A stretch of 64,000 bases of DNA, taken from assembly GCA_047495785.1 (NCBI GenBank), contig JBLDXI010000029.1:806001-870000 (forward strand). Reading direction: 5' to 3'. Shown here piece by piece: positions 2,602 through 49,134 of this stretch (positions are counted from its first letter, which is position 1; each line of letters starts with the position of its first letter). Origin of the DNA: Lepidodermella squamata. Its lineage: Eukaryota > Animalia > Gastrotricha. The position numbers were made by a program, and so were the translations under genes. Below the pieces are notes generated by a model. That model saw only the letters and a list, made by a program, of their open reading frames with translations. It was not told the DNA's origin and made no database searches.

Positions 2602-2645
2602 CGAAAGAAAAGACTTGATATAAAACTCATCTTCACTTGTAATTA

Positions 2646-4900: not shown

Positions 4901-7231
4901 ATGCGTATTGATTTCGGGATTATACTACGTTTTGCCCTGCTGCTTTCTTCAGCTGAAGCAGCACCATACGTGCTACGTTTATTAAATTTTCGCAATCAGC
5001 CACCAGGTAGTTCTTGCGCCATTGGCCAAGACATTGCCGTGGACTTGGTCAACAATCGAAGCGACATATTGCCAAATTACCATGTTGTCCTCACAACGGT
5101 CAGCGAGGGTCCGAATGCCATGCTTGCGCCCAAGGCTTTGGCGGACTTTGATCGGCGTTTCGAATCTCAGCAATTTACCGATTTTCAAGCTCCTCTCATC
5201 TCAGGTGTGTCGTTTACGCCTGGCTGCAGAGCCGTCGGCTCAATGGTTCATCATTTCGGCATGATCATTCTGACGGGAAATTGTCTCAATCCAAGGTTCA
5301 CTGCTGACAGAAAGTTGTATCCTGGCATGTATCTCGAGCGGGCATCGGCTGAGGTAGCCAACTATCCAGTTATCGCTTTTATAAAACGTATCGGCATGTG
5401 GCAGAAATTTGGGATCATTGCTAATTCAGAAAATGAATTCAACATTGCTGTAGCCTCCCATCTTCAGCAAACAGCTAAAGCAGAAGGCCTTGTTGTCAGC
5501 TGGTTCGAAGCGACACCGTTGCCAGATGAGAACACAATGCGTTTGTTAAAAGAGAGTGGTGCTAGAATTATCTTCATTCAAGCAATAGAGTATCCCTTTT
5601 TCTCAAACTTTCTCTGTCTAGCGTATGAAGCTGGAATTTACGGGACGAGGTACGTTTTCATTACATCGTATTCCTTGGCTTTGAGAGATCCGAGTTTGAC
5701 AACTTCGGATTCTTGTTCGGCTCCAGTAATAAGAAAGCAAATGAGTAGCGTCTACTACGCTGGATCAGCTACTTTCGCCTTCGAAAATAATGGGGCTGTT
5801 CAGTTAGGATATGACATCTCAGGATTCGACGCGTTGTTTTCGATGTATACTAACGGCACTAAAAAAGAGGACTATCTGGAACGTTTGCTATGTCACGATC
5901 GAATTCTTCACAGCCTACTAGTCTTAGACGAAACTGAGAAACGTTTAACGAGACTGAATATGTCGTTGCGAGATTTTAGGAATAATCGGTCAACTGTCAT
6001 GGATGTCCTAAACCAAACCGTTCCATCACTGCCTTTCACTGGGCTACGTATCGGGAGATTCGGATACAGTGAAAGGCTTGAAATTGAGGAAGATCTTTGC
6101 TATGTCTCTAGCCAATCGGCAGCACTTTCACTCAACTACAACTTGAAAATTGCAGTTGGCAATGGAAACACTACGAACGTTTCAGCCATCATCAAATTTT
6201 CGCAATCTCCATTCCAGCCGCTGCGTTGGAATACATTGGACGGGAAGCCGCCAAAAGACAGTGCTCTGATTTTTGTTACAACGAAAAAGATAACACCAGA
6301 AACTCTCTACGTGATCGCCTCAATTGCTTTGGTGACTTTCATTTTAAAAATTGCTGCCATTATCGCAATATATTTCGCTCGAAGATTGAAACAGCTCGCA
6401 CCTTCAAAAGTCGAATGGATTGTGCTATCGCTTGGCTGCATTTCGCTCGAAATTGCTGCGGTTCTTTTTGCATCTGGACTGGAGACAAATGGCGAACTTA
6501 CGTGTACTACTCGCATCATACTCTCCGTTATTGGACTAACGGTTATTCACGGCTTATTGTTGATAAGAGTTATGCAGAGATACAGTTTTCTCGATTCATC
6601 GGGCAAATCATATGGGAGTAGCGCCAATTCCAGTGCTCAATCAGGATTTAGAGGATTGAGGCAACAATCAAACGCGAAGCCCTCTGGCCGCCAAAAGAAG
6701 AGACACCGAAGCCTGACAGCAGTATTTACGCTCAAATTCATTATCTCCATGGCAGGCTTGATTGCGATACTCAACCTTCTGGGGCTTGCTATAATATTCT
6801 TATCGGGGCCTCAACAAGTTTTGGTGGTAAGAATTGACGAGGAATCAATTTATGACACCGATAGTGACACTGTCAATGAGGTTTTCGAACTTCACTGCCA
6901 CTCAGAATCTGCGACCGTTTTTTACGCGTTGACTGTTAGCATTCATGGTTTGATCTTGTTCGCTTCGGCTTTCATATCGTACCAATTACGATCAAAAGCC
7001 GATATGAAACATCTGCGTCTCGCAATCGTAGGCGAATTGACCCTTTTCATCGGCTTTTGCCTCATAGTGTTAGTGTTGTCCTCAGACTCGGCCACGTCAC
7101 AATACCTGGCTACATCCATAGGGCTTCTAATTGTTTCTGCATTGATACCATCAATATTTTTTCATCGGCTGAAGTCCCTGGGATCTTCCGAATATCGGAC
7201 TAATTCAGCTGCGGGAAAAGCGCTATGTTAA
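4901..7231 (+). CDS. Class C GPCR, GABA-B-receptor-like, paralogue 2, intronless
   Basis: ORF 4865-7231. The ATG at 4901 (MRIDFG...) aligns with the MRI start of paralogues 1 and 3, and the protein is collinear with them. Confidence 0.88.
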   Translation: MRIDFGIILRFALLLSSAEAAPYVLRLLNFRNQPPGSSCAIGQDIAVDLVNNRSDILPNYHVVLTTVSEGPNAMLAPKALADFDRRFESQQFTDFQAPLISGVSFTPGCRAVGSMVHHFGMIILTGNCLNPRFTADRKLYPGMYLERASAEVANYPVIAFIKRIGMWQKFGIIANSENEFNIAVASHLQQTAKAEGLVVSWFEATPLPDENTMRLLKESGARIIFIQAIEYPFFSNFLCLAYEAGIYGTRYVFITSYSLALRDPSLTTSDSCSAPVIRKQMSSVYYAGSATFAFENNGAVQLGYDISGFDALFSMYTNGTKKEDYLERLLCHDRILHSLLVLDETEKRLTRLNMSLRDFRNNRSTVMDVLNQTVPSLPFTGLRIGRFGYSERLEIEEDLCYVSSQSAALSLNYNLKIAVGNGNTTNVSAIIKFSQSPFQPLRWNTLDGKPPKDSALIFVTTKKITPETLYVIASIALVTFILKIAAIIAIYFARRLKQLAPSKVEWIVLSLGCISLEIAAVLFASGLETNGELTCTTRIILSVIGLTVIHGLLLIRVMQRYSFLDSSGKSYGSSANSSAQSGFRGLRQQSNAKPSGRQKKRHRSLTAVFTLKFIISMAGLIAILNLLGLAIIFLSGPQQVLVVRIDEESIYDTDSDTVNEVFELHCHSESATVFYALTVSIHGLILFASAFISYQLRSKADMKHLRLAIVGELTLFIGFCLIVLVLSSDSATSQYLATSIGLLIVSALIPSIFFHRLKSLGSSEYRTNSAAGKALC

Positions 7232-7261
7232 GTAATCAACTGTTATTGCCATTATCAAGCT

Positions 7262-7468
7262 TCTGCGTCTCGCCTATTGTAGGCCGATTAACGCTTTAGC
7301 TTTTCGTCATCACGTGTCTCATATTATAGGTATTATTGTCAACCTTGGCCATGTCGTATTATCCATTGGACTCTTGCTGTCGATACCGTCAATACCAGTT
7401 ATGTCTTTTTATCGTTTAAGGACCACGAATTCGATTATATTTCAGCTATACCTGAAACCATCGCTTAA
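7262..7468 (+). pseudogene. Decayed copy of the TM6-TM7/C-terminal coding end of the class C GPCR family
   Basis: TCTGCGTCTCGCC..TGTAGGC..ATTAACGCTTT...TGTCTCATATTA...TTCAGCTATACC matches 2385-2601 with indels and stops. Confidence 0.65.
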
Positions 7469-7611
7469 AAGGGATAGACTAATTAAATGACGGTATGAAT
7501 TACTTGAGTCAATGAATTAAAGACAGTGAATCGCACTTTTTTCAAAAAATCAACTTTATCTACTTTGCATCAGAGTAAAAGGTTGTAAGACAGTTCCCCA
7601 ACGTCCAACGT

Positions 7612-8045
7612 CACTTCAGCAGTGATATTTGAGCAGGCGAGACTTCAGCAGAACTTATTTCAGCAGTTGCTCAGCAAACAGCACTTAAGCAATCGAGTGT
7701 TCAACGTATAGAGTCTCTTTATCCGCTGAAGTGTCGTTATGACAAAATGTCTTATGCTCAAATATGCATCTGCTAGAATGTGAAACGTTTATTCTACTAA
7801 TCTGCTGACCTGGCGTCTGTTTAAATTGTGTTTTGCTCAAATTCACACTGAGTAAATGTCGTATGCTGAAATGACTTCTGCTAAAATATATCATTGCTCA
7901 CAAGACTTCTGCTGAAGAGACGTTTGCTTATATTACAGCTGCTAAAGTGTGAGTTGCTGAAGTTTCGATCGCTTAGGTGCTGTTTGTTGAGATAGCGAAT
8001 GCTAAACTATGTTCTGCTGAAGTGTCTGCTGAAGTCAGCGGATTT
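7612..8045. mobile_element. Foldback-type non-autonomous element built from ~15-bp subrepeats (core CTGCTGAA / TTCAGCAG)
   Basis: The first ~90 bp carry the core inverted (TTCAGCAG) and the rest carry it forward. CTCAGCAAACAGCACTTAAGCAATCGA (~7670-7696) is an imperfect inverted copy of TCGATCGCTTAGGTGCTGTTTGTTGAG (~7965-7991). Confidence 0.55.
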
Positions 8046-8487
8046 CGGCTGAATTCAGACAAAATATGCGCAAGAGCGAGTCTCGTTCCGTGAGGTTATT
8101 TTCCTGTTTACACATTCAGGTTTAAATTTTCCCAGGATGGACTGCGGAATGCGTGGCTCAGCTTTCGTCTTCTCGAGACCTCTATGTATCACAGAGGAAG
8201 CGTAGTGGCGCAAAACACGATCGAGTGGACTTGAAACTCCGACGTTCGACCCACTCAGTTACTGTTTCTGAGCACGATTGTTTGCTATCCTATCCGCGTA
8301 GATGCTTGAGAGCATGAGCTCATGCCATCGGAGGCTTTCAACTGACTAATCCGGAGCAGGAAATCCTGCAGCGCCAAATTTATCAACTTTCCTTGAGAAC
8401 GCCTAAGCTGGGGTGCAAATGAATGTTATAAGGTCTATTTAACATCATTCAGAGACTCAATTATAAGAAAAAAATTATTAGAGGGAT

Positions 8488-10854
8488 ATGCGGATTATTT
8501 TTGTGATTGGCTTTTTCGTTGTCTTGAAATGCTGTGAAGCTAAACCAAAGCCATACGTGCTCCGTTTGTTAAATTTTCGTAATCAGCAGGTTGGAGGTTC
8601 TTGCGCGATCGCTCAAGACATCGCTGTGGACTTGATCAACAATCGAAGCGACATATTGCCAAATTACCACATTATTCTCATAACGACCAGCGAGGGCCCG
8701 AATGGCATGCTAGCGCCGAAAGCTTTGGCTGATTTTGATCGGCGTTTCGAACCTCCACAGGTTACCGAATTTCAAGCTCCTCTCATCTCTGGTATGTCAC
8801 TAACCCCTGGTTGCAGAGCGGTAGGCTCGATGGTACATCATTTTGGAATGATACTATTAGCTGGAGGATGCCTCAATCCAAGATTTACGGCTAATAGGAG
8901 GCTGTATCCTGGTATGTACCGTGAGCGAGCGTCAGCCGAGGTCGCAAACTATCCAGTCGTCGCTTTTATAAAGCGCATCGGATTTTGGCTGAAGTTTGGC
9001 ATAATTGCAAATTCAGAGAATGAGTACAATATTGCTGTAGCCTCGCATCTTCAGCAAACAGCTAAAGCAGAAGGCCTTGTTGTCAGCTGGTTCGAAGCGA
9101 CACCGTCGCCAGATGAGAACTCTATGCGGACGTTAAACGACAGTGGCGTTCGCATAATTTTTATTCAAGCAGTAGAATTCGCCTTTTTCTCCAATTTTCT
9201 CTGCCAAGCCTACGATGCTGGAATTTACGGGACGAGGTACGTTTTTCTAGCATCTTATGGCTTGGCTCTTAGGGATCCGAGTTTGACAACATCAGATTCT
9301 TGTTCAGCCCAGGTGATAAGAAAGCAGATGCGTAGTATCTACTATGTGGGATCCACTCCATTCGCCCTCGAAAATAATGGCCCCGTTCAGCTAGGTTATG
9401 ATGTGCAAGGATTCGATGCCATTTTTTCTACACTCTCAAATGGAACTAAGCGGGAGGATTACCCCGAGCGAGTTTTTTGCCACGATCGAATTCTTCACAG
9501 CCTGCTGGTCTTAGACGAAACTGAGAAACGTTTAACGGGACTGAATATGTCGTTGCGAGATTTTAGGAATAATCGGTCAACAGTTATGCATGCACTTAAC
9601 CAGACAGTTCCATCCTTGTCATTTATTGGGCTTCGCATGGGAAAGTTCGGATACAGTGAAAGGCTTGAAGTTGAGGAAGATATATGTTACGTTTCCAGCC
9701 AATCGGCAGCACTTTCACTTGACTTCAACTTGAAGATTGATTTTGACAACGAACCGTCATCAGGCAACTCTAAAAACACTTCAGCAAGTATTAAATTTGC
9801 TCCGTCACCTTCACAACCATTAAAGTGGATTACCCAAGACGGGATGCCGCCAAAAGACAGTGCCCAACTTGTCATTTCAACGGAAAAGGTACCACCAGAA
9901 GTTCTCTATGTGATCGCATCACTAGCTTCCTTGGCGTTTATTTCAAAGCTTGTTGTCATGGTTGCAATTCACTTTGCTCGCGGGCTAGAGCAGTTTACGT
10001 CATCCAAACGTGAATGGATCTTGCTATCGCTTGGCTGCATTTTGCTCGACATTGCTGCTGTCCTTTTCGTTGCCGGATTAGAAACCAACGGCGAAATTTT
10101 ATGTGCCATTCGAATTAGTCTCGCTGTTTTTGGATTAACAGTTACACACGGCTTTTTGTTGATAAATGCCATGCGTAAATACAGTTTTCCAGGGCAAACA
10201 TCGCGAAAATTATATGGGACGACCAGCCCACATTCCACGGTCCAATCGGGAATGAGCAATTCGACCGTTAAAGAAATAAGGTCCAAGTTATATTCAGTGC
10301 GGTCTGGTACTTCTCAACGAAAACGAAAGCTGAAGACGACAGTTGCTTTTTCGAAGTCGTTCACTACTTTCGTGGTGATCCTGATCGTCATCGTCAATAT
10401 TGCAGGACTTGTAATATTGCACTCGACGGGAGCTCAAAAGGTATTGAAGGTGAGATTGGACGAGGAATCGTTCTATAACGAATTCAGCGACACTGTAAAC
10501 GAGGTTTTTGAGTTACAATGCTACTCAGAAACCGCGACTGTTTTCTACGTGTTGACTGCCAGCTGTCACGGTTTGGTCATGTTCGCTTCGGCTTTTATGT
10601 CCTACCAACTGAGATCGAAGGCTGACATGAAGCACCTGCGCCTCGCTATCGTAGGTGAATCGACCCTTCTTATCGGCATAATTCTCGTAGTAATGGTGCT
10701 ATCCTCAGACTCGGCCACGTCGCAATACCTGACAACATCCATTGGGCTTTTTATTGTCGCCGCGTCGATACCAGCTATATTTTTTCATCGTCTTTACTCT
10801 CTGGCAATCTCTGGAGAGCGGAGTAGCTCAGCTATCGGAAACAATAAACGCTAG
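8488..10854 (+). CDS. Class C GPCR, GABA-B-receptor-like, paralogue 3, intronless
   Basis: 788-aa ORF collinear with paralogues 1 and 2. Confidence 0.88.
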   Translation: MRIIFVIGFFVVLKCCEAKPKPYVLRLLNFRNQQVGGSCAIAQDIAVDLINNRSDILPNYHIILITTSEGPNGMLAPKALADFDRRFEPPQVTEFQAPLISGMSLTPGCRAVGSMVHHFGMILLAGGCLNPRFTANRRLYPGMYRERASAEVANYPVVAFIKRIGFWLKFGIIANSENEYNIAVASHLQQTAKAEGLVVSWFEATPSPDENSMRTLNDSGVRIIFIQAVEFAFFSNFLCQAYDAGIYGTRYVFLASYGLALRDPSLTTSDSCSAQVIRKQMRSIYYVGSTPFALENNGPVQLGYDVQGFDAIFSTLSNGTKREDYPERVFCHDRILHSLLVLDETEKRLTGLNMSLRDFRNNRSTVMHALNQTVPSLSFIGLRMGKFGYSERLEVEEDICYVSSQSAALSLDFNLKIDFDNEPSSGNSKNTSASIKFAPSPSQPLKWITQDGMPPKDSAQLVISTEKVPPEVLYVIASLASLAFISKLVVMVAIHFARGLEQFTSSKREWILLSLGCILLDIAAVLFVAGLETNGEILCAIRISLAVFGLTVTHGFLLINAMRKYSFPGQTSRKLYGTTSPHSTVQSGMSNSTVKEIRSKLYSVRSGTSQRKRKLKTTVAFSKSFTTFVVILIVIVNIAGLVILHSTGAQKVLKVRLDEESFYNEFSDTVNEVFELQCYSETATVFYVLTASCHGLVMFASAFMSYQLRSKADMKHLRLAIVGESTLLIGIILVVMVLSSDSATSQYLTTSIGLFIVAASIPAIFFHRLYSLAISGERSSSAIGNNKR

Positions 10855-11526
10855 ATTAAAAGCGATACGAGTATATTCAGTCATCTGGTTGACTGAATCA
10901 AACCCCACATTTGCTTGCGCTATTCATTTCGTCATGTCGAGGCTCGAGTTTTTCGCCGTTGAAACTGATTCATGCACTAAAACAATAACCTTCAATTGTT
11001 GAAGTTCATATTCGGCGTTGTAGCAGCAATCCGGAATTTGAGTAGGATCAGCCTCAGGCCCATTTACAATCGGGTAGCAGCCATCGCCAACAGACACTTT
11101 TGTGCCACCAAAAGGGGCGTTATTTTTGCAAATATCGCGAATGGTTACGGGTTTGCGAATGGTAATCATGTTTTAAATTACTTCAATTGTTATTTCAATT
11201 GTGGACAAATAAAAATGTGTTCGAATTTTCCACCGTCTGACCCAGTAGTTTTTCATCTTTTCGATGTACTCTAGTGTAAGTTTCCGTGTGTAAAAGAAAT
11301 CGGGTGAAAAACATGTCATTGATGCTAAACCGGATATTTAGTTTTAAGGAGTTTTAAGAGCTCTATCTAACACATTAGAGTGCTCAACAATCGGAAACCA
11401 TGTAAAAACTTGAGGGGGAAGATCGAGTTAGGCCTAGGAAGTTGGATGCAGGCATGTGACATGCGTAACCTCAAGGCACTCAAGTCATTTTCTTCTCATT
11501 ACAAGCTCATTTTTCGTTAAGCTATA

Positions 11527-13839
11527 ATGATTTTTACGTTTATTATTTCAACTTTGCTGGCTAATCAGGGCGCAGTGGTTGGAAGTAAGCCCAAAACGCT
11601 TCGCATGCTGAATTTAAGAATACAATCGCCGGGGAGCGCATGTGCCATTGGGCAAGATATCGTTGTAGATATCATCAATAATCGAAACGACATTCTACCG
11701 AATTACCAAGTCGTCCTTCACAGTGTTACTGAAGGCGCAAATGGCATGCTAGCTCCCAAAGCAGTTGCTGATTTCGACCTGAGCTTCGACGGGCAGCAAT
11801 CGACATACCAAGCCCCTTTGCTGTCAGGGCCATCTCTTACACCTGGTTGCAAGGCTGTTGGCTCTATTGTGCATCACTTCGGAATGATCGCACTAGCTGC
11901 AGCGTGTCTCAACCCTAAATTCACAGCAAATAGACGTCTCTACCCAGGTCTGTTTCGCGAACGGGCATCGGCTGAGATATCCAACTATCCTTTGGTCTCA
12001 TTCATAAAGCGAATAGGACGCTGGCAGAAGTTCGCCATTATCGCAAATTCGGACAATGAATACAACACTGCAGTTGCAACTCATCTCCACCAAACCGCTA
12101 AATCAGAAGGTCTGATGGTTAGCTGGTTCGAGGCAACTCCTTCGCCGGATACTAACTCGCTGAGCTTGCTAAAAGATAGTGGTGTTCGGGTGATCTTTAT
12201 TCAATCTGTGGAAAGCCCTTTCCTGTCCAACTTTCTTTGCCTGGCGTATGAAGCGGGAATTTACGGGCCGAAATACGTTTTTATAACTACCTATTCCTTG
12301 GCTTATCGAGATCCAAGTTTGACAACCACAGATACCTGCACGGCCCAAGTAATCAGGAAACAGATGGGTAGCATCTACTACGCCGGTACTGCAACATTTA
12401 CCCTCGAGAACAACGGCTTCCTCCAGCTAGGTTACGATCTTTCTGGGTTCGATGCTATGTTTCTGAATTACAGTAATGGCACGAAACGAGAAGATTTTTC
12501 TGACCGAATTTTTTGCCACGATCGCATCTTGCATTCTCTGTTAGTTTTAGACGAAACGGAAAAACGCCTGCAAATGCAAAACATTTCGTTAAGTGATTTC
12601 CGCGAAAATCGAGCCTTTGTTATGAACGTTTTAAACGAAACTTTGCCGTCACTTCCGTTCACCGGACTACGTATGGGCCTGTTCAAGTACAGCGAGAGGC
12701 TTGAAATCGAGGAAGACTTGTTTTACGTGTCTAGCCAAGCTGCATCGCTTGCTTCGGCTTTCAATTTGAAAATAATAGCAGGTAGTGCTAATACTTCCAG
12801 AGATTTCGTGAAGCCGAGCTCTGGCATCCAACCACTCAAATGGAACACTGTTGACGGAGAACCGCCAAAGGATAGCGCCCGAGTAATCGAAACACTGAAA
12901 TTTGTACCCCAAGAAGTTGTCTATCTGATTATAATTGCCGCAACAATCGTTTTGACGATAAAGATAGTTGCGCTCGGCGTTATTTTCTATTTGAAAAGAA
13001 AGAAAAAACTTCCCACATCGATTCAAAGCAACTTCGAACCGATAATTCTGGTATTTGGCTGCACAATTGTGGATGTTTCTTCAATTCTCTATGTAAAAGG
13101 GCTGAATCAATACGGCGTGTTAATATGTGATTTGAGACTGATCTTAGGCGTAATTGGTATGACTATCGTCCATGCATGCCTCTTCACAAGTATTCTGACG
13201 CGTTACAAGTTCAGTGAACCTACCGGTAGCTGTAATGTGTCCGATAATGGGGATCCGCGAACGAAAGGTACCGTACTCCGAGCGCATTCAAGAACTTATC
13301 CGGCCCGTCATCAAAGGAAGATCCATAGAACAACGCCTTCTTCCACCAGAAATGTTGCTATTGCTTTAGCTCTAGCCTTTGCGGCTATTAATTTCATCGC
13401 GTTGATCGTCGCGTTCTCCGACGGATCTTTCAGGGTGGTTTCGGTCGCCGTGGTTACAGAATCTGGGTACGATGATGATTCTGATGCGATATACGAAGTG
13501 TTTGAGTATCAGTGTCAGTCGGTGGCCATCAATACATTCTATGCGATGACATTTGGAAGCCATGGTCTTGTCATTTTCACGACAGCTTTCATGGCATATC
13601 AACTTCGAGCTAAGACTGATGTAAATCATTTACGTCTTGCTGTCGCTAGCGAGATGACGCTTTTCACTGCAATGTGTCTCATTGTGACTGTTCTATCGTC
13701 ATCCTCTGCTACATCCCAGCATTTGGCCGTCTCAATTGGATTGTTCATTGCTGCTAGCTGCACCCCATTCTTAGTTTTTTATCGTCTGTTTAGTAAGGTA
13801 AAAACGACAGCCCTTCGCCAGTCCAGTGTTCCGGCCTAA
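11527..13839 (+). CDS. Class C GPCR, GABA-B-receptor-like, paralogue 4, intronless
   Basis: 770-aa ORF with the same VFT motifs (DIINNRNDILPNY, ERASAE, GEPPKD) and a more diverged 7TM region. Confidence 0.88.
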   Translation: MIFTFIISTLLANQGAVVGSKPKTLRMLNLRIQSPGSACAIGQDIVVDIINNRNDILPNYQVVLHSVTEGANGMLAPKAVADFDLSFDGQQSTYQAPLLSGPSLTPGCKAVGSIVHHFGMIALAAACLNPKFTANRRLYPGLFRERASAEISNYPLVSFIKRIGRWQKFAIIANSDNEYNTAVATHLHQTAKSEGLMVSWFEATPSPDTNSLSLLKDSGVRVIFIQSVESPFLSNFLCLAYEAGIYGPKYVFITTYSLAYRDPSLTTTDTCTAQVIRKQMGSIYYAGTATFTLENNGFLQLGYDLSGFDAMFLNYSNGTKREDFSDRIFCHDRILHSLLVLDETEKRLQMQNISLSDFRENRAFVMNVLNETLPSLPFTGLRMGLFKYSERLEIEEDLFYVSSQAASLASAFNLKIIAGSANTSRDFVKPSSGIQPLKWNTVDGEPPKDSARVIETLKFVPQEVVYLIIIAATIVLTIKIVALGVIFYLKRKKKLPTSIQSNFEPIILVFGCTIVDVSSILYVKGLNQYGVLICDLRLILGVIGMTIVHACLFTSILTRYKFSEPTGSCNVSDNGDPRTKGTVLRAHSRTYPARHQRKIHRTTPSSTRNVAIALALAFAAINFIALIVAFSDGSFRVVSVAVVTESGYDDDSDAIYEVFEYQCQSVAINTFYAMTFGSHGLVIFTTAFMAYQLRAKTDVNHLRLAVASEMTLFTAMCLIVTVLSSSSATSQHLAVSIGLFIAASCTPFLVFYRLFSKVKTTALRQSSVPA

Positions 13840-14011
13840 TTCTTTACTAATTCATAGCCAGTTGAATTGAATGCGTCAAACCACATACATATTTTGCTGC
13901 TCTTTGTCAAACACTAAAGCATTTGTCGTGAACGCTTTAAAATGACGTTATTCCAGTTTTCTGAAAATAAAAAAAAAACAAAAAACAAAAAATAATAAAA
14001 GCAAAATATTG

Positions 14012-14084
14012 CGCCCTCCGGGGGACTCGAACCCCCGACCCTGTGATTAAAAGTCACATGCTCTACCGACTGAGCTAGGAAGGC
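14012..14084 (-). tRNA. tRNA-Lys(UUU)
   Basis: Reverse complement GCCTTCCTAGCTCAGTCGGTAGAGCATGTGACTTTTAATCACAGGGTCGGGGGTTCGAGTCCCCCGGAGGGCG forms a cloverleaf with TTT anticodon and is followed by T-runs. Confidence 0.95.
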
Positions 14085-25818: not shown

Positions 25819-27311
25819 ATGAACTACGAGCGCGATAATTTTCACTTCTATGTTGAATGGCCTGAATCTTGCTATCGCAATGAAAATTTCAGCAACGTTT
25901 GGTATAATTTCACAGCGAAAACAAACTTTGACGCCTCGAGACTGCCATTCAATTGCCGGGAATACCTGGAAAACTGTTCGTTACCAGGAGCAATTAATTG
26001 CATCGAGCGAAACGTCGATTACTGGTCAAATTTCATGTATTGGTTGCCATTTGGTATCATCGGTTGCGTGCTATCAACTTCTTTGAATCTGTTCGGAACT
26101 TACCTACTACTTCGATTACACTCGAAACCGGTTAATTTTCATTCGAAAGACTCTTTCTAAATGGCAAGAACCTTGATTTTTCAGCGCCATGTTATCTTGA
26201 TCAGCTTGTCGATGTCGGATGCTTCCCTTGGAAATGCGGCGGTCACTTCCTTCTCGACTGATCAGTATCCACCGTTTTTGGATCAACAGCCTCTCGTGCA
26301 CCTCATCTCGAACATTGTGCTCATCGTAATGAAGAGATTTTTGATTGATTACTCTATATTTTCCTATGCTGAACGTTTTTCACAGACGTCTTGGCTCGTC
26401 TCAACATCATGCTTACTTCTGTTAGCCCTAGACTGCTATTTAACAACTCGGTTCGTATTCAAATACACACAGCACTGGATTCTCAATGCTACTAGAGTGG
26501 TGATTCTCATTCAATGGATTGGCTGTGCTAGCCTTGCCGTCTCCCTGAAAATCAATCCTCGCGATAATATGGTCACTCATCTGACATTTCTCGGGTTATT
26601 TTTCGCTGTTCAGGTCGTAGTTCTTGCGCTTTCAATCGACGCCTTCAAACTTACTGAGAGGATAAGGTTCGATTAATTTTGTATGAGAATTTTACGTTGC
26701 ATTTTTCTTCAAGGCGTCTGAGAAACGCATCGACACTCTCTAACGAGCGTGTAAAGAAAATGTCCAGGTATGAATTGTTTCCTTGGTTAATAATTAGTAA
26801 TTAGTATATCTCGACAAATATCAGTAAGAGCCGCTTCAAATCTTTGGTGACAATCTTGGCACTCGTGGCCTGCTCTTACATCCTCTGGATACCCCTATTT
26901 GCGAATCTAGCCGTTAGTCCCAAGATTCAGGAGGCGAATAACAGCTTTCTGGTTTTGTAAGATATCTTTAAGATGCGAGAAGACCTTATCTATTTGCTTT
27001 GCAACAGTGTTGTCGCCTTTGCTGTCAGCTCCCTTCAAATGAACTCTATCGTAAATCCTATAATCTACACGCTAAGATTCTCCGACGTTCGAGAGCAGTT
27101 GGCGATAATTTTCGGCCGTTATCGTGGTACTCGCCGACTGAGCAGATTGTTGACTAAAGAGGATATCAAGTCATTTGAAAGCAGGCGAAAGCTGGCAGTT
27201 GACGTTCTCGCTTCATCAGCTGCACACGGACTTCAACTGGAGATGAGTGAAGTAGCTGTTGGGCTAGACCAATCTTCAGAACAAGATTGCGATGCAGTGT
27301 CTCAGAATTGA
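25819..27311 (+). CDS. Orphan class A GPCR, paralogue C, six exons
   Basis: MNYERD start; motifs LISLSMSD, LALDCY, CSYILWIP, NSIVNPIIYTLRF; same intron positions as paralogues A and B. Confidence 0.82.
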
Positions 27312-27436
27312 AAAGACCAATGACCATGAGAAAGAACGATCAGTTTCTAGTCCAATTCTATCAATACCCTATGAATTTTACTGATTTGTTTCCATTAAAA
27401 AATCTGTTAACGTTTATTATTCGAATGGAAAATTGC

Positions 27437-27808
27437 AAAAGAAGGGCGCCGCCTCAAAGCTCCTGGGAGCCAAGGCCCACGGCACCGCTGGTGGAGGCGT
27501 TATGGAAGGGAGAGAGAGAGGAGGTCTGGAGCTAAACTACCGCTAGGCACTGATGGCGTTGGTAGCCTAGAAGACACAGCATACACCCATGAGTTAGAGC
27601 CAAAGCTTACTGGTCGCCGAGCGTTCGGTCGTTCGATCGATCGGTGGATCGTCGCGCGACGTGCTGCGGCACCGCTACTCGATTGAGCGACAGCGCGAAG
27701 AGACCTACAACGACAAGACACACAAAGGCTGGGGGATCGGCCGGTCGGAGGAGACAGCGATCAACTCGCAGCTAATCTTGAAAGGGTACTCACGCGTTGT
27801 CCGCCTCC
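27437..27808 (-). ncRNA. Candidate 7SK snRNA (Pol III transcript, ~372 nt)
   Basis: On the minus strand, 5' GGAGGCG pairs with CGCCTCC just before a terminal hairpin (GGTGCCG/CGGCGCC) that ends in TTCTTTT. The 5' hairpin GCTG..GTT-GATC...GATC-CCCCAGC carries the paired GAUC motifs with preceding Us. The region is a GC-rich island without a credible ORF, with TATA-like TTCATAAG about 30 nt upstream. Confidence 0.7.
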
Positions 27809-28152
27809 ACACATGCTCACCAGCAAATTCCGACTTATGAACCCGACCCGAAGTTGGATGCTTAAAACACGATTAATTAGCAAATTTGTACGTTGGTTTT
27901 GATTGAATTGGATACCTTAACATGGTAATGCAACATCTTGAGATTGAGTCATAATGGTGAATGACATTATTATGGCTAAAAAACTATGTGGGTACAATTA
28001 AACGCTTAGAAGAACGCGATGAAAATGTGCATATTCAAATTAAGCATGCATTAGCTCTAAGAAAATGAAGTCAAGTTTTGCCGCCACAATCAACTAATTC
28101 TCAACTGTATATAATACAAATACAAGGAGTTGATCGCCCTGTTTGTTCAACT

Positions 28153-28225
28153 GCCTTCCTAGCTCAGTCGGTAGAGCATGTGACTTTTAATCACAGGGTC
28201 GGGGGTTCGAGTCCCCCGGAGGGCG
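28153..28225 (+). tRNA. tRNA-Lys(UUU)
   Basis: Identical to the minus-strand copy at 14012-14084 and followed by a T8 terminator. Confidence 0.95.
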
Positions 28226-28299
28226 CATCATTTTTTTTAATCGTTTCATTTGCGATTGCATCATTCTGTAGTCATGCAATGCAGTTGCTAAACATGCAC

Positions 28300-28371
28300 T
28301 CCCTGATGGTCTAGTGGTTAGGATTCCGCGCTTTCACCGCGGCGGCCCGGGTTCGATTCCCGGTCAGGGAA
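28300..28371 (+). tRNA. tRNA-Glu(UUC)
   Basis: TCCCTGATGGTCTAGTGGTTAGGATTCCGCGCTTTCACCGCGGCGGCCCGGGTTCGATTCCCGGTCAGGGAA, with anticodon arm CCGCG-CT-TTC-AC-CGCGG and a T6 terminator. Confidence 0.95.
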
Positions 28372-28543
28372 CATTTTTTATTCATTGATTTCATTTTTTA
28401 GTTGTCTTTGTACTTTTGGCATTAAGTTTGGAGTAGAAGAGGGAGGTTCCATTATTACGCCATTCCATTGTTAACCAATGGTTTCTTTTTTAATTAAATT
28501 AACAATAAACAATTATCAATGACGCCAGAATTCGCCTAACGCC

Positions 28544-28568
28544 TAACCAATTAGTCATCCCTATAAAA
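28544..28568 (+). promoter_or_regulatory. CCAAT + TATA promoter of the cationic secreted-protein gene
   Basis: AACCAATT at ~28545 and CTATAAAA at 28561-28568, ~80 bp before the ATG at 28647. AATAAA lies at ~29284, downstream of the stop. Confidence 0.55.
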
Positions 28569-28646
28569 TCCTGCCCCATCCCGCGATCATCTTCAATATT
28601 CGATTTCCATTTGATATTCGCTTAAATCTTTAATAACATCTCCAAA

Positions 28647-29209
28647 ATGCGTTTTGCTTGTGCCATTGCTGTTGCTGTCCTTATGGCTCTTGGTAATACA
28701 TTGAAGTTAGTGCTTTCGGCAAATATTCATTGTTTCTTCTTTTTTTAGCCTTCACCGAGACCGAAGCCGGTCGTGGCAAGCCGAATAAGGAAGTTTCCCG
28801 AAGCTTCTCGTACAGCGTCTCGAAGAGCGGCTCGTACCAGAAGAACAAGCGGCCGGCGAAGAACTTCGGCAAGAAGTTTGTCTCGAAGCGCAACAAGCGC
28901 CGCGGCTCGTACTCGAAGTCGGTGTCTGCGTCGGTGTCCGCCCGCACCAACAAGCACACCCGCAAGGTGTCCACCAAGAAGTTCAAGCGCGTGCAACAGC
29001 GCATGTCCAAGTCTGGCTCGTACTCGCGATCCGGCTCTTTCGGCGGCCGCAAAAGCAAGCGTCACGGCAAGTTCAACAAGAAGGCTGGCCACAAGAAGTT
29101 CGGCGGCAAGCGCAACAAGAGTCGCAAGGGCCACAAGAGCGGCAGCTACTCCGCCTCCAACAACTTCTCGTACAGCGTCGCCGTCGAGACTGGCGCCGCT
29201 CCGCAGTAA
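28647..29209 (+). CDS. Secreted, cysteine-free (mature part) Lys/Arg/Ser-rich protein with (Ser-X)n blocks; 168 aa, 2 exons (28647-28692, 28749-29209)
   Basis: Exon 1 encodes MRFACAIAVAVLMAL, and a 56-nt phase-1 GT-AG intron joins it to AFTETEA-GRGKPNK..., completing a signal peptide. Strong C/G-ending codon bias; TATA box and polyA signal present. Confidence 0.85.
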
Positions 29210-30237: not shown

Positions 30238-32550
30238 ATGAATCATCTATCACTGACCATTTTATTACTACTTCTAGTTTCAGCAAAGCTTAGATGCTCC
30301 CCTAAACCAATTCGGCTTAGAATGCTGTCGATTCTACCAGTCAACTCGGGCATTCCCGGAGTAGAATTCAACCGCTGCTCTCTGGCGCAAGACCTGGCTG
30401 TTGAGCTGGTCAATAACAGAAGCGACATCTTGCCCGAGTACCACATCGAGCTGGACCATCGTGATGAAATCGCGAATACTGCCGGGTCAGCTCAGCAGGC
30501 TGTTCGTTTCACATGGGACTATTTCGACTCGACGAATGCTACAAACGTCATCCCGTCACCAGTGGCATTGGGCCCCATCTTCACTGCAGGGTGCAAAACT
30601 TTGGGATCTATCGCGAATCACTTGAATATGGTGGTGATTGCAACATCTTGTCCAGCGCCTGGTCTCACGCAACGCCGTGACTTGTATCCTAACCTCTACC
30701 GTGTCCGAGCATCAGCAGAAATCGCTCTGATATCCCGTGTTCAGTTCTTGAAGACCTTCACCAAGATTCGAAAAATCGCAGTCATCGCAGTACTTAACGG
30801 CAATGCTTTCAACACAGAGTCGGCCATCTTCCTTCACAGCGCTTTGGTTCGAACCGGCTTTGACGTGTTAAAGTTTGAGGCAGTTACTGATTTCACTGAT
30901 GAATTCATCCAAACGTTGAAAGACGCAGATATTCGTGTTTTTTCAATGGACGCCGGTGATTGGCGGTCAATCGCAATCTTCCTGTGCCAACTCTACAAAT
31001 TTGGCATGAAAGGCGACAGATATTTGTTCTTTGTAGCTGGTATTGGCTACATTGACCCGTACGGCATTGCTGTCTATCCGCCTGGCTGCACTAGAGGCAT
31101 CTACATAGAACAACTCACCAGAACAATAGTGTCTGGTGCAGCTGATCCGCAAGTCCTCCCTAACACTGGCGTTGATGAGATGGGCATCAGTTACAGCGAT
31201 TTCGAGCGTATTTGGGCAGAAAAGGCCACTACAAAGGAAGCTGGTGACACTTTCCGCCATTTGTGCTACGACGCTGCTATGACAGCACTGAGAACACTGG
31301 ATGTAATCGAAAACAGACTTAAATCCTTGAAGAAGACCTTGGCTGACTATCAAAATGACCGAAATTTGATAGGTTCCATCGCTAACAGAAGTATGGCTGA
31401 TATTTCTTTCAAAAACCTGAGAACAGGCCATTTCTACTACTCGAAGCGAATGGAATGGGACGGAGAACCTCAAATACTAACGACTTACCAAATCGGAGTG
31501 GGCCAAGTTGTAAGATACGTCGTATCGTTGAAAGAGAACTCTACTAATCTTCTCGACTCAAACTCTTTTGTCATAACAGCGAAGAAGCCTTTTTCATCAA
31601 GTTTCATGCCTAAAGATTCGGCTGATGAAATAGAAGTGATCGCCGGGAATTCGATCATTGGATTTGTTGTCATCTTGGTAGCATCAGGTTCACACATTTT
31701 GGCCTTGGGGCTATTCCTCGTGCGAAGCATCCTGAAATCGCTGAAATCTTTCGGGAAGCTACTTAAGCAAGACGCAGCCTTCCTTCTCAGCTTTGTTCTT
31801 CTCAATGTTTCTTCTGCCCTTGTATCGACGAATGTTGAGATGAAGTCAGCAAAGCTGTGCGCTGCGAGTTTGTTCTTCATCTTAACGGGAGTTACTCTGC
31901 TCTTTGCGTCCCTCAGCGTTGAAGCACACGAATTGGTTAAAGCTTTGCGGCCAATTTCAAGCAAAATCAAACAACATCGCCGGCTTCCTGAGATCAAGAC
32001 GGTCCGAATGTTAGTCTCAGTCAAAACAGGGATCATAGTGAGTATAGCTATCATCTTCTACGCCGTCTGGATTGCTGTAGATCCCCTTCATGTTGTGGCA
32101 GAAGTCCGAGGCCACAAATATTCTGAGCCTGTCGATGCTTATGTGACAACAATTGACGTAACTTGCCACTCCAAATTTGGCTCAGCTTGGGTTGGGGCGT
32201 CTTTGGTCTACAATTTTGTCGTTCTTATGTCAGGGCTTCTGTTCGTTATGAGGTTGCGGGCTAAAAAGGGCATCAAACTCTTCCCTGAAATGAGAAGAAT
32301 TGCCATGTCAACAATTCTTTGCATTTCTATATTCGTTGCTACAACAGCTATTGGTTTCATGAATTCGCCTGGCGCAGCCCAGGATTTGTCGATCGCCGTC
32401 GGGCTCCTGGTGACGTCGTTGGCAGTCAGTGCAATATTCTATTTTTTATCATGGAAACGTCAGAATTCAAGGGCCATCACTGTTGTTGATACGTCAATTC
32501 TTCAATCGGTAAACGGAAGGCCAACCTTCGCAAACGCCGCAGTGTTTTAG
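30238..32550 (+). CDS. Class C GPCR, GABA-B-receptor-like, divergent paralogue 5, intronless
   Basis: 770 aa; signal peptide, LAVELVNNRSDILPEY, YPNLYRVRASAE, CQLYKFGMKGDRYLFF, MPKD followed by 7TM. Confidence 0.87.
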   Translation: MNHLSLTILLLLLVSAKLRCSPKPIRLRMLSILPVNSGIPGVEFNRCSLAQDLAVELVNNRSDILPEYHIELDHRDEIANTAGSAQQAVRFTWDYFDSTNATNVIPSPVALGPIFTAGCKTLGSIANHLNMVVIATSCPAPGLTQRRDLYPNLYRVRASAEIALISRVQFLKTFTKIRKIAVIAVLNGNAFNTESAIFLHSALVRTGFDVLKFEAVTDFTDEFIQTLKDADIRVFSMDAGDWRSIAIFLCQLYKFGMKGDRYLFFVAGIGYIDPYGIAVYPPGCTRGIYIEQLTRTIVSGAADPQVLPNTGVDEMGISYSDFERIWAEKATTKEAGDTFRHLCYDAAMTALRTLDVIENRLKSLKKTLADYQNDRNLIGSIANRSMADISFKNLRTGHFYYSKRMEWDGEPQILTTYQIGVGQVVRYVVSLKENSTNLLDSNSFVITAKKPFSSSFMPKDSADEIEVIAGNSIIGFVVILVASGSHILALGLFLVRSILKSLKSFGKLLKQDAAFLLSFVLLNVSSALVSTNVEMKSAKLCAASLFFILTGVTLLFASLSVEAHELVKALRPISSKIKQHRRLPEIKTVRMLVSVKTGIIVSIAIIFYAVWIAVDPLHVVAEVRGHKYSEPVDAYVTTIDVTCHSKFGSAWVGASLVYNFVVLMSGLLFVMRLRAKKGIKLFPEMRRIAMSTILCISIFVATTAIGFMNSPGAAQDLSIAVGLLVTSLAVSAIFYFLSWKRQNSRAITVVDTSILQSVNGRPTFANAAVF

Positions 32551-43366: not shown

Positions 43367-46300
43367 ATGGCATATTTGAAGGGCGCTTCTTCAAATAGCC
43401 ATGACATTCTGCATCGTTACGAGAATGTATCAGAGTAAGTACATCTTTCGCTCCGGTTTTCGGATTCACAATAATCTTGTGCTATCCTATACTTTTTTAC
43501 AGATGCTTTGAAGCGGCGCCATTAACCCGGCATCCGAGTTTCTCGGCGAGGAAGATGACTAACACGAGTTCATCATCGTATAACAAATCGAATAGTGTGC
43601 TTGCATCAGGTCAACCGATCGAATCGTCTTTTCGGCTTTCAGGAGCAGCGCGGAAGTCATCTGAAACTTTCATTTCTGCTGGCAAAATGAAAAGTGGCAT
43701 CACGCCGCCTCTTCGTCAACGCTCTGATACTTCCCAAATCTACTTTCCGCAGATGGAGACTGACAATTACATAAACGGGGAATGCTTTGACGAATACGGC
43801 GATGGAATTCCGTTTCACGGCGATGAAGATTCCGACCCGTTTATTCGCGACAATGGTATCGATCCCTTCCATGAAGGTGATTATGATCAAATGTACGAAG
43901 AGAGTGAAGAAATCAGGCCCGTGTCGATCAGCTCCAGCACCATCCCAGGTTGGTTCAACCATGTGACGTGAAGACGACAACTTGAATCTCTCATCTTTCA
44001 TCTCAGGTCTATCGAGTCATGCCAAATCCTTCAAAGATAGCTTGGCGGATAAATCTGCTTTCATTCGTAATATTTTTCAAATCGACTTGCAAAATCATTG
44101 ACTTCTTATTCTCTAGCCGTCAAATTTCAGTCGATTTTTCCTTATCCCTCTTTCAACAAAATGCAGAATATTGTGATGAAAGATGTGAGTTTGCTCAATA
44201 CTGACATATTTCATTTGTTTGCTTAATAACTAAATGTGATAGTTGTTGGAGTCCGATAGTCATGTTGTTATCTGCTCACCAACTGGCAGTGGTAAAACCG
44301 TCATGCTTGAATTTGCGATCATTCGTGTCCTGAATCCGGTCTCGTCAAACCAAGGGAAGCCGAAAATTCTCTATCTATGTCCACTGAAGTCGCTGTGTGC
44401 CGAGCGTCTATCTGACTGGACTAAAAAGTTCTCAGCGATAGGCTTCAAGGTCAGCGAACTTACAGGTGATAACAGCGAATCTAACGACGCGGCCGAGGCT
44501 GAGGTACTGAAAACTAGCGACATTATTTGCTCGACCCCTGAGAAATGGGACTGGGTAACAAGACGATGGCGTGATATTACCACGAGCATCCAACTGATTC
44601 TAATTGACGAAGTTCATGGAATTGGCGCTGAAAATCGCGGCCCTACCCTAGAAGCTGTGATAACTCGAATGAAGATGTTAAATTCCAACAATAAATCTCC
44701 CTGCCGATTCGTCGCGATTTCAGCTACAGCACCGAATATTGCTGATATCGGGCTTTGGCTTGGATCTCGTGATAAATCGAACTCGAATAATCGGTTCGTC
44801 GATTCGAAGTTGAAAGAAGCGAAAGTTTTCAAATTTGACGAAACCTATCGACCCGTTCCGCTTGAGAAAATTGTCATTGGATACAGCGTGGGCGAAAAAC
44901 ACAACGCGTTCAGTTTTGATACAATGTTGAACTACAAATTACCGGCTGTTATTGAAGTGAGTTAGATTGCTGGTGTAAAAATTTTCAATTTTTTATTGTA
45001 TTTTTTCAGCAATATTCCTCTGGGAAACCGACGTTGGTCTTCTGCATGTCTCGCAAATCGACCGAATCCGCGGCGGCTTATGTAGCGAAAAATATGCAAA
45101 GATTAGCAAATCAACCGCAGAATTTCATCAATGCCACTCGAAATTTGAATGATCCTAAACTTCGCCAGTTGGTTCTTCAAGGCGTCGCGTATCACCACGC
45201 TGGACTGTCGCAGCCAGATCGTCAGCTGATTGAGCAGTTCTTCATTTCGGGGCATTTGCCTGTGCTTTGTAAGTCGAAAAATATTTGCCTATAATACTTG
45301 AAATATCTGAACTGCCCATTCAATAATGAACCCTGAGATTTCTTTGAAATTTATTTGAACCTGTCGGAAAATCAACAAGCAGATTAATTTTCGAATTTTA
45401 TGATTTTTAACAAATTTTGAAATACGAATCACCGCAATCTTTGGCGGCAACAGCCTCATCAGCCGCTAAGCCACGGCCAGACGATGTTTAATATTGCTGG
45501 ACTTCGAAATTGAAAATCGAGCTTAGAATATCCTAAATTATTGTAAAAATTAAAAAAATTATTTGTTGGTTAAGAAATTGGGCTAATTTTGTATAATTTC
45601 AGTTTCAACTAGTACCTTGGCGGTTGGAGTGAATCTACCCGCTCATCTAGTAATCATCAAATCAACATGGCACTGCACCGGTCCAATGGGCACCCCGGAC
45701 GAGCTAAACGACGCTGATCTGCTGCAAATGATCGGCCGAGCCGGTCGGCCCCAGTTCGACACGATGGGAAAAGCCGTAGTTATGACTCGCCAAGTCACGA
45801 AATCACGCTACGAGTCCTTACTATCAGGCACTGCCGTAATCGAGTCGTACCTTCACCGCAGATTGGTCGAGCATCTGAACGCTGAACTGGTTCTCGGGAC
45901 TTTTGGAACGGTTTCTTTAGCCCTTGAATGGATTAAGGAGACGTTTTTGTTTGTCCGCCTGTCGAAAAATCCGAATTTCTACCATTTCGAACACGAGAAA
46001 TCGCTGGCGAAGAAACCGAGTTCGCCCGATGAATTTTTGACGGCTTTGATTTTGAACGCCCTGGAAGAGTTGGAAAACATCGGCCTAGTCACTGTGAATC
46101 GAAATGTTGACGATCATAAATTGATCCCGACCTACTACGGCCGTCTAATGGCTCGACACTGCATTGCGGTGAACACCATGAAGTTGATAATGGAGGCGAA
46201 TAACGCGGAGAATGACTCGCTGAACACGTTTCTATCGCTCCTATCGCGAAGTTCCGAACTCGAAGACATCGCGCTGCGTTGGAATGAGCGAGCAGTGTTG

Positions 46301-49134
46301 AATTCGCTGAATAAAAAGTGCAAATTTCCACTCGATGGCGGGGTGAAGGCGTCTCAGGCTAAAACTAGCGTGTTGATTCAAGCCACTCTGGGCTGCTTGC
46401 CTATCGAACACGCCGCCTTGTTGCAGGATACGTATCGCATTTTTCGGGTCGGCTTTCGAGTCGTCAATTGCTTGCTCGAGGCGATTTGGAACCGGGCTGA
46501 TGTTGGGCAGGTTTCTTTCGGTGTCCTGCAGAGTGTTTGCCAGTTCGCCAAAATCATGCGGGCACAATTATGGCATGGTAAATTTTCGAAATTTTATTTG
46601 CAGATATTTTATACATAATTATTATTTATCTGAGGCTAATAGAAAATTTTGCAACTTTTGCTACATTTTTCCGGATTTTGTCTGAACCTTTATCTGGAAT
46701 AATCATAGAATTTCATTTTGAACAGACATTTTCGAGTTATTTCTAAAAATGGGAACCTTTTATATGATTAATTTTAAACCAATTATTCGATTTCACTATT
46801 ATCAGGACGAATGGTTGCATAAAAAGCTAAAAAGTGGAAAAAGTAAAAAAAAAACCTTGGCCCAAATTCACTTCGAGTATATCAAATGTTTCTGATTGAA
46901 TAAGCTGCTTTTCTTTTTTAGATTCGCAGTTTTGCTCGAAACAATTGCCTGGCGTTGGAGTGACAATTTCCGGCCTTCTAGCCCGTGCTGGGCTGGACAC
47001 GTTCGACAAAATCGCGGATACGAACGTGACAAAAATTGACGCAATCTGCGGCAGAAACGTGCCTTTCGGCATCAATCTACTCAACGCAGTCGCTGGAATT
47101 CCGAAATACCGCGTCGAACTCACCCAACTCGAACCAAACAGCGAAACTACGGCGAAAATTTCAGTTCGCGTTGAAATTTTGAACGCTGCGACTGTGAGCA
47201 AACGAGCGCAATTTGGCTTGGATCACAAGATCACTCTTTTGATTGGTAAATTTCGATTAAATTGCAAATGCAAGGCGTTATTTTCGCCGTGTTTAAGGTG
47301 ATTCGCGAAATGCTGTCCTTGGCCATTTTCGGCTAACCGACCGAAATTTGTTGGAGAAAAATGGCAATTGGGAGAGGCAATTTACCGCTGATCAGTTTTC
47401 GCAGAATGAGCAGAAATCGAATTTAACATCCCGCCCGGTTTTGAAAGTTTTCGCTCGCCTAATCAGCCTTGAATATTGCGGGTGTGACGTAACTGCCGAG
47501 TTGGAGCCGAAATTTCAACCGCCAACCGGAAAGAAAGTTCGCTTTTCAACGTCTGTAACCCGCAGTGTTGTAGTCGACCCATTCGAGGCGCCGAATTCCG
47601 CCGTTCGGCCGTCGACATCTTTCACCGGAAAACCGTCTCAGGATCATCATTTCGAGAAATTGAAAATGTTCAGTGCGAGAATTTCGAAGAAGCCGATGCT
47701 GATTGGCGACATCGATGAAGTTTCCGATGAATTGCCGCCTATTGAGCCGGAGAATGGCTACTGCGAGGAGGGCGCGGATGAACAGGTGAATCACTCAGTC
47801 GGAGTACCCGATGCTCCGAATCCGTCGCCTAAGAAAAAGCCGCGAACTACGGTGGCGAAGCGAGAGCCGAAAAAGCAGCGACAGGTACATTTTTATTATT
47901 TGCTGGAGTATTTGTTTGCTTCCAATGGAACCCGGGATTAGTCCGAGTTTACTAATCGAGAAATCGAGAAGCAAAGGAATTTCTTGAATCAGTGGCTTTT
48001 CAAAATCGGTATTGATTTTTTCGATTGAAAAAAGCGCCGCGATTCTGATGATGCAGTCGGCTTCAAAAAACAACCAAAATCGAATCTTATTTACGGATAA
48101 ATACGGAAAGAGAGTAGATGAAAGCAACTTTCGCCTCGCAGTATACTTCGATTGCTTCAAAACTGAGTTTTCTTTAAGTCATAGGCTAAAATAATCGAAT
48201 TGGATTATTAGACCCGGGTCTTTTACTTAACTCGTGGAAACTGTTGAATCAAGCAATCTATACTCGAAGATTTTATTGTCTTTCTTCCTCTTGCCCACCT
48301 TAAATAAGTAATCCGCCAAATGCGCCTGTGCTTCAGTAGAAGAAAACGAGATTGAAATCCAGCCGCGAAATCTAGCAAAATTGTAGCATTTTTTATTTTG
48401 TTGTTGTTTTAGTTTTAATCTTGTTTACAAATAATTTTTAGGTCAAAATTGATGAATTTCTGGTGCCTAAAACAAGTTCGTCCAACTCAAGTGCGACCTC
48501 AGACGATTCAAATCAAGCTAGCGATGAACTAGCCTCGCCGCCCGAATTTCCGTCTCGCTATTCGAAAATGATGTCTAGTGCCCAGTATTTTTCGAATGCA
48601 AACCCGGAGAAGACGCCGGCCGAAGATTTCCAGACGCTGCAATCGTCAGTCTCCAGCAGCAAGTACACGTTCAAGCCACGTGGCGCGATTGGAACGGTTG
48701 GAACGAAACCTGCGCCGCGTAACGTACAGCCAAAGCCTGATGCGGTTAAAATGAGCGATCGACTGCTTTCAAATATCAACAATTCCAGGCAGGAAGCACC
48801 TAAACCGGCTGTAAAAGCAGCACCTGCCGTCAAAAATTTGGTAATTTCTAAATTTATCCAAAAACCAAAAATATGTTTCTCAAATGTTTTCCAGGATGTC
48901 GAATTATCTTCTTTGCCTGAACCAAAGCCCGCAAAATTTCCCGCGATGAACGTTGCGAAGCCTCAAGTTGCGCCGAAATCTAGTCCTGCAAATTATTTTG
49001 GAGATTTCGATAGCAGAATTTCGAAGCAAAATGTTGAGAAATTTCAACCTTTCCGCCAACTTACTGCGCCAAAACCCGTTGTCGACTCTGAACCAATGGA
49101 CCTTTTCGATGTTTTTAATTCTCAATTGTTTTGA
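43367..49134 (+). CDS. HFM1: Meiotic DEXH helicase HFM1/MER3, multi-exon (5' end approximate)
   Basis: FQSIFPYPSFNKMQ, SPTGSGKT, TPEKWD, DEVH, RGPTLEAVITRMK, GVAYHHAGL, STSTLAVGVNLPAHLVIIKST, QMIGRAGRPQFD, Sec63-like region and a disordered C-terminal tail. Confidence 0.9.

Follow-up and report, generated by a model that had tools for sequence, protein, structure and literature searches.

The minus strand of the 64-kb window (the whole stretch of DNA that was analysed) contains at positions 27437-27808 a candidate RNA gene of 372 nt, which is probably a member of this animal's 7SK snRNA gene family, because both the architecture of the RNA and the expression data fit this assignment. 7SK provides the main restraint on P-TEFb in animals. 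It evolves so rapidly that, beyond vertebrates and arthropods, it goes unnoticed in standard annotation. Public data show that an abundant RNA of near-identical sequence exists, which is non-coding, is derived from the minus strand, and has its 5' end at about 27808. The status of this RNA as a lineage-specific 7SK is suggested by its modelled architecture. The RNA is numbered such that nt 1 corresponds to 27808 and nt 372 to 27437. Its features, with the evidence for each of them in parentheses, are as follows.

27437-27808, minus strand: whole predicted RNA gene (sequence, GC island, cDNA contig 27514-27810, metatranscriptome contig 27496-27757, lone U4 at the 3' end)
27834-27841, minus strand: weak TATA-like element TTCATAAG (-33 to -26) with a putative function (sequence)
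27802-27808, minus strand: GGAGGCG, the 5' half of the terminal closure (M1/SL0-like), with the mapped 5' end (pair probabilities, primer junction of the cDNA contig)
27689-27801, minus strand: predicted 5' hairpin domain (SL1-like), RNA nt 8-120 (MFE, lower-stem probabilities of 0.81-0.96, z = -1.86)
27759-27764, minus strand: UU-GAUC (nt 45-50), 5' half of the predicted helix resembling the HEXIM site (fold; layout compared with that of human HP1, PMC2995076)
27735-27740, minus strand: CC-GAUC (nt 69-74), with the second GAUC (27735-27738) following a one-nt pyrimidine bulge (pair probabilities, descriptor statistics)
27500-27688, minus strand: variable central domain, nt 121-309 (folding z = -0.59, no special stability)
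27543-27570, minus strand: CUAGGC/GCCUAG hairpin within the central domain (MFE)
27502-27522, minus strand: CU-rich linker within the central domain (sequence)
27493-27499, minus strand: CGCCUCC, the 3' half of the terminal closure, separated from the terminal hairpin by 3-4 nt (pair probabilities)
27443-27489, minus strand: predicted terminal hairpin at the 3' end (nt 320-366), whose 3' strand contains a UU bulge (pair probabilities of 0.63-0.99, z = -0.8)
27437-27442, minus strand: single-stranded tail UCUUUU, the T4 run of which is the likely Pol III terminator (sequence; 3' end placed by prediction)

The GC content of the 372-nt stretch is 0.59, as compared with 0.36 in its upstream flank and 0.39 in its downstream flank. 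The candidate RNA starts with GGAGGCGG, the first seven letters of which are GGAGGCG, and ends with CUUCUUUU at 27437. A GC-rich island of the minus strand that extends from GGAGGCG to TTCTTTT had been reported in a preliminary description of this DNA, and it is present as reported there, as is the element claimed near -30. This element, TTCATAAG, is the only promoter-like one found in the AT-rich region upstream of 27808, and is at most a weak TATA box. A PSE is not recognisable upstream of the RNA gene when it is sought without a U6 reference sequence, and an Rfam scan detects no U6 gene in the 64-kb window. The candidate RNA contains a single U4 run, which is located at its 3' end, and no internal one. 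Additional T runs, at 27429-27432 (5 nt downstream) and about 35 nt downstream, follow the likely terminator as a back-up. The T run alone would place the 3' end at 27437. In contrast to Drosophila snRNA:7SK:94F, the candidate has no internal T runs, so that its transcription by Pol III stays plausible. No long ORF supports a coding function of the stretch, and the stop-free frames within it (86 aa and 82 aa) give no match in the protein collection. On the left side, the gene is neighboured by an ORF for a rhodopsin-type receptor with its 3' end at 27311 (plus strand). On the right side, it is neighboured by a tRNA-Lys(UUU)/tRNA-Glu(UUC) pair at 28153-28372, which is divergent to the RNA gene and located 345 bp upstream of it. 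The proteins of the neighbouring genes have no exact match on record. The adjoining position of these tRNA genes, which are themselves Pol III genes, is counted in support of the 7SK reading.

Expression was searched for in a word index of public runs with a query of 386 nt and then with a query of 701 nt, and four runs were aligned to a stretch of the locus from which the tRNA genes were excluded. Of the words sampled from the 386-nt query, 25-58% are present in each of at least seven metatranscriptomes, which come from different studies (wetland, freshwater, plant-associated, sediment and lake). The absolute count of matching words in the metatranscriptomes is unchanged when the query is widened from 386 to 701 nt, indicating that the matching words are all located inside the RNA and none of them in the sampled flanks. 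Two further runs carry the same species label. One is DNA-like (X1) and also contains words of the flanks, and the other is cDNA-like and contains words of the RNA part but no sampled words from the flanks. Two contigs correspond to the RNA. One of them, a metatranscriptome contig of 266 nt, is located entirely within the RNA (27496-27757). The other, a cDNA contig of 319 nt with a depth of 40, is from a small (21-Mb) run of 2014 with the same species label, and covers 27514-27810. Both contigs end in or beside the CU-repeat linker, at 27496 and 27514 respectively, and the predicted 3' hairpin and tail (27437-27495) are outside both of them. Raw reads of polyA type from a related species do not map to the RNA (0 reads), as is expected for a Pol III RNA, and are therefore uninformative.

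The cDNA contig extends beyond 27810 by 16 nt of non-genomic sequence, the reverse complement of which is GTGGTATCAACGCAGA. With the two letters that come next (GT), GTGGTATCAACGCAGA constitutes the 3' part of a cDNA-amplification primer that is widely used (1,147 papers). The primer sequence is joined straight to GGAGGCGG, and a T run is not present at the junction. We take this primer to be the SMART/ISPCR (template-switch) cDNA primer. The lack of a T run between the primer and GGAGGCGG indicates that the junction represents the template-switch end, that is the 5' end, of the RNA. The location of this end at GGAGGCGG indicates in turn that the RNA strand is the minus strand and that its 5' end is within about 2 nt of 27808. 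Thus, a minus-strand transcript with the 5' end that had been predicted from the DNA is found among public RNA contigs.

The two contigs are not identical to the copy of the gene in the window. Both of them have a 6-nt insertion behind 27557 and an A>G change at 27553, and one of them also lacks 2 nt at 27510. These differences indicate that the assembled RNA is the product of an allele or a paralogue that is almost identical to the window copy. The RNA may come mainly from a paralogue, and the window copy itself may be silent. According to this reading, the window copy would be a pseudogene, silent or decaying, with an expressed 7SK-like gene as its paralogue, and the public RNA would come only from copies elsewhere. 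This reading concerns the window copy only and is compatible with the assignment to the 7SK family. It is favoured by the contig differences and is nevertheless somewhat unlikely, since the window copy equals the expressed form over about 297 nt apart from loop changes, and since its helices, its terminator and its AT-rich upstream region with the -30 element are all intact. In addition, rarer variants get lost in contigs, so that the absence of the window copy from the contigs is no evidence of its silence. All three differences are located in regions that are predicted to be unpaired, namely the loop of the hairpin of nt 239-266 and the CU linker. This distribution is weakly consistent with structural constraint, with a chance of roughly 1 in 10 in the modelled fold.

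Drosophila provides a precedent for more than one 7SK-type gene per genome, and specialised 7SK particles have been proposed for its 7SK and 7SK:94F. It is conceivable by analogy, and quite doubtful, that the window copy belongs to a small family of distinct 7SK-type RNAs that are encoded in repeated Pol III gene cassettes and form at least two specialised 7SK particles, instead of representing one gene and its copies.

The reading as a copy of the 7SK gene of this animal is based on the fold of the RNA as well as on its expression. The ends of the RNA are predicted to be closed by 7 base pairs, as nt 1-7 and nt 310-316 are paired both in the fold of minimum free energy and in the ensemble (probabilities of 0.98-1.0). 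The following 113 nt (nt 8-120) are predicted to form one long 5' hairpin, with stem probabilities of 0.81-0.96 and a z-score of about -1.9. The distal part of this hairpin contains the GAUC helix, in which G47, A48, U49 and C50 pair with C74, U73, A72 and G71 respectively, with probabilities of 0.90-0.98. This helix lies between U45U46 and a single bulged C, which is followed by a helix of G-C, C-G, U-G and G-C pairs and a 6-nt loop. Downstream of the second M1 strand come 3-4 unpaired nucleotides, a predicted hairpin of 47 nt whose 3' strand contains a UU bulge, and finally UCUUUU. The folding energy of the whole RNA is ordinary as compared with that of shuffled sequences (z = -0.32), and the z-scores of the sub-domains range from -0.6 to -2.1. 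Thermodynamic stability adds nothing to the case for 7SK.

Of the pairings proposed in the preliminary description, that of the 5' end with CGCCTCC at 27493-27499 before the terminal hairpin and that of UU-GAUC with a second GAUC in the 5' hairpin (27759-27764 and 27735-27738) are both present at the high probabilities given above. The pairings proposed for the central part fare less well. A CTAGGC/GCCTAG hairpin is present in the fold of minimum free energy (nt 239-244/261-266), but its probability in the ensemble is only 0.09. The AGGTCT and AGACCT sequences, which were thought to close a central domain, are present at nt 103-108 and 282-287, but they pair only in a sub-optimal alternative with a probability of 0.016. 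When the AGGUCU/AGACCU pairing is forced, the energy of the fold is -125.7 kcal/mol, which is 3.8 kcal/mol higher than that of the optimum (-129.5 kcal/mol).

The frequency of the GAUC arrangement was estimated with a descriptor, which consists of UU-GAUC, a spacer of 10-30 nt, and GAUC with a distal helix of 3 bp and at most one bulged nucleotide. When the candidate RNA is shuffled, 0.015% of the versions contain this descriptor within their first 120 nt, corresponding to a chance of about 1.5e-4. On both strands of the window (128 kb), it is found three times, as compared with 0.28 times expected, and the two other occurrences are inside long ORFs. The descriptor is not unique in the window, and alone it does not make a 7SK. 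The strength of the case is provided by its combination with the 7-bp terminal closure directly before the terminal hairpin and T run, and by the expression data.

The arrangement in the candidate can be compared with the HEXIM site of human 7SK. In the human site, as determined by NMR, G42-C45/G64-C67 is located between the bulged U40U41 and U63, and is followed by G46-C48/G60-C62 (PMC2995076). Either a change of GAUC to GGCC or the loss of either bulge compromises the binding of HEXIM to human 7SK (PMC2995076). The candidate repeats the layout of human HP1 almost letter for letter with UUGAUCGC ... GGC-Y-GAUC, and may bind HEXIM by analogy. The spacing from GAUC to GAUC is 24 nt in the candidate and 22 nt in human 7SK, and the position equivalent to U63 is occupied by C in the candidate. 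The third GAUC, which is located near the 5' end of human 7SK, is missing from the candidate, and the alternative pairing GAUUAGC/GUUGAUC has a probability of only 0.003.

The elements that are conserved between vertebrate and invertebrate 7SK RNAs are SL1, SL4, the GAUC motif and the 5'-3' closure (SL0/M1), and the centre is not conserved (PMC10083321). In work on Drosophila, the marks of a divergent 7SK are M1, the GAUC hairpin (M3) and the 3' hairpin (M8), and not its sequence (PMC8406779). Like vertebrate 7SK, the candidate starts with GGA, and its 5' end is predicted to form 7 bp with a site that immediately precedes the 3' hairpin (M1/SL0). Its 5' hairpin is likewise about 110 nt long and contains UU-GAUC-GC ... 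GGC-Y-GAUC in the distal part. Its predicted 3' hairpin likewise contains a pyrimidine bulge on the 3' strand and is followed by a tail of the UUCUUUU type. Both RNAs are abundant, and neither of them has an internal U4 run. In contrast, the candidate is 41 nt longer than human RN7SK (331 nt), its central domain is unrelated to that of the human RNA, and its predicted 3' hairpin is about twice as long. Overall sequence similarity to vertebrate 7SK (RF00100) is not detectable, as no covariance-model match is obtained at E<=10. As judged from M1, M3 and the predicted M8, the candidate would belong to the same divergent class as the invertebrate and arthropod 7SK RNAs (RF01052; Drosophila 7SK of 444 nt, snRNA:7SK:94F), but it does not match the arthropod model.

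If the candidate functions like the known 7SK RNAs, RNA polymerase III would start at G 27808 from an upstream external promoter and stop in the T run at 27437-27440. The ends of the RNA would be joined by the predicted 7-bp helix between nt 1-7 and nt 310-316. The distal UU-GAUC/GAUC helix of the 5' hairpin would bind a HEXIM dimer, so that P-TEFb is sequestered. The 3' hairpin and the U tail would be offered to a protein of the LARP7 type, and an enzyme of the MePCE type would cap the 5' end. The binding of these proteins and the P-TEFb function are thus attributed to the candidate RNA by analogy.

Neither the 7SK model of Rfam (RF00100) nor the Arthropod_7SK model (RF01052) matches the window at the gathering score, and neither of them matches queries of 701, 381 and 113 nt at E<=10 with lax filters. 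A match to these models, which had been proposed as a check, is thus not obtained even at this threshold. The Rfam matches overall are tRNAs and two chance matches (snoZ5 and SOX2OT), and no other Rfam family fits the candidate RNA better in either the gathering-score or the E<=10 scan. When metagenome contigs are scanned with a pattern of the GAUC hairpin, 107 loci are obtained. All of them are chance matches, with no blastn homology beyond the pattern. A scan of viral contigs with a looser pattern gives at least 120 chance matches and no homologue. The lineage-specific 7SK identity proposed in the preliminary description is favoured by the M1/SL0 closure, the GAUC/GAUC hairpin, the predicted 3' hairpin with its U tail and the abundance of the RNA, whereas the Rfam models do not recognise it.

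The lack of a match to the Rfam 7SK models at any threshold tried, together with the occurrence of the GAUC descriptor at two other places of the window inside long ORFs, would be consistent with an abundant lineage-specific small RNA of Pol III type other than 7SK, in which the GAUC hairpin and the end pairing arose by convergence or chance. We regard such an RNA as unlikely. A UU-GAUC/GAUC helix with its bulges is rightly placed in the 5' hairpin, at a chance of 1.5e-4, and the very 5' end is closed by 7 bp immediately upstream of a predicted terminal hairpin with a U tail. The size and abundance of the RNA are typical of 7SK. Furthermore, invertebrate 7SK is known to evade homology searches (PMC2770079).

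It is very improbable that the candidate is another housekeeping RNA missed by the detection (RNase MRP, RNase P, telomerase RNA or SRP RNA) or a SINE: the MRP and telomerase RNAs are likewise hard to find in invertebrates (PMC2770079), but the CR-I/CR-V (P4), CR-IV and GARAR motifs of RNase P/MRP (searched as regular expressions of the consensus) and an Rfam match are absent, the RNA contains no 6-8-mer of any CCCUAA permutation (TTAGGG telomeres being assumed), and the gene has neither tRNA-type A/B boxes nor an A tail, is not flanked by target-site duplications (the longest word common to the flanks is 6 nt), and is present in a single copy in the 64-kb window. The consensus motifs of Sm-class snRNAs and of C/D and H/ACA RNAs are also absent from the candidate RNA.

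If the assignment of the candidate to 7SK is correct, the mapped range of the HEXIM/LARP7/MePCE system would be extended. A literature search reveals no paper that connects 7SK with rotifer taxa. A sequence so divergent that only UU-GAUC/GAUC, M1 and the 3' hairpin are retained would sharpen the definition of the minimal functional core of 7SK, and would allow better covariance models for 7SK to be built. The gain lies in annotation and is not a conceptual surprise.

Several other features are found in the window. Five intron-less genes for class C GPCRs (ANF_receptor and 7tm_3-like domains) of about 770-790 aa, four of which are arranged in tandem, are located at 238-13839 and 30238-32550 on the plus strand. 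One of these receptors has no relative at E<=1e-20 in a word-based search of 5.8 billion proteins. A spliced-leader sequence of bdelloid type is absent from the window. An ORF fragment at 45617-46618 (plus strand) contains the SNRNP200/Brr2 winged-helix and Sec63 domains, indicating that a spliceosomal helicase gene is present in the window. Near the end of the rhodopsin-type receptor ORF, a segment of 34 nt at 27304-27337, outside the RNA gene, is matched by eight and two raw RNA reads of related species with less than 90% identity and four fixed differences. These reads run into unrelated sequence on both sides, and the segment is therefore a short one common to another transcript.

The tRNA-Lys(UUU) and tRNA-Glu(UUC) genes form a cassette at 28153-29209 (plus strand) with a two-exon gene for a secreted, very basic protein rich in Ser, Lys and Arg, the ATG codon of which is at 28648 and the intron of which is at about 28694-28749. 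Upstream of the tRNA-Lys gene by 16 nt, GAGTTGATCGC at 28127-28137 (plus strand) is the same 11-mer as RNA nt 42-52 on the UU-GAUC side. It is on the strand opposite to the RNA gene, and the identity is probably due to chance. Two tRNA-Ser(UGA) genes at 59606-59687 (plus strand) and 59770-59851 (minus strand) are convergent, tail-to-tail and 82 nt apart, and have equal covariance-model scores. A second tRNA-Lys(UUU) gene at 14011-14084 is 95% identical to the copy at 28153 over 95 nt including short flanks.
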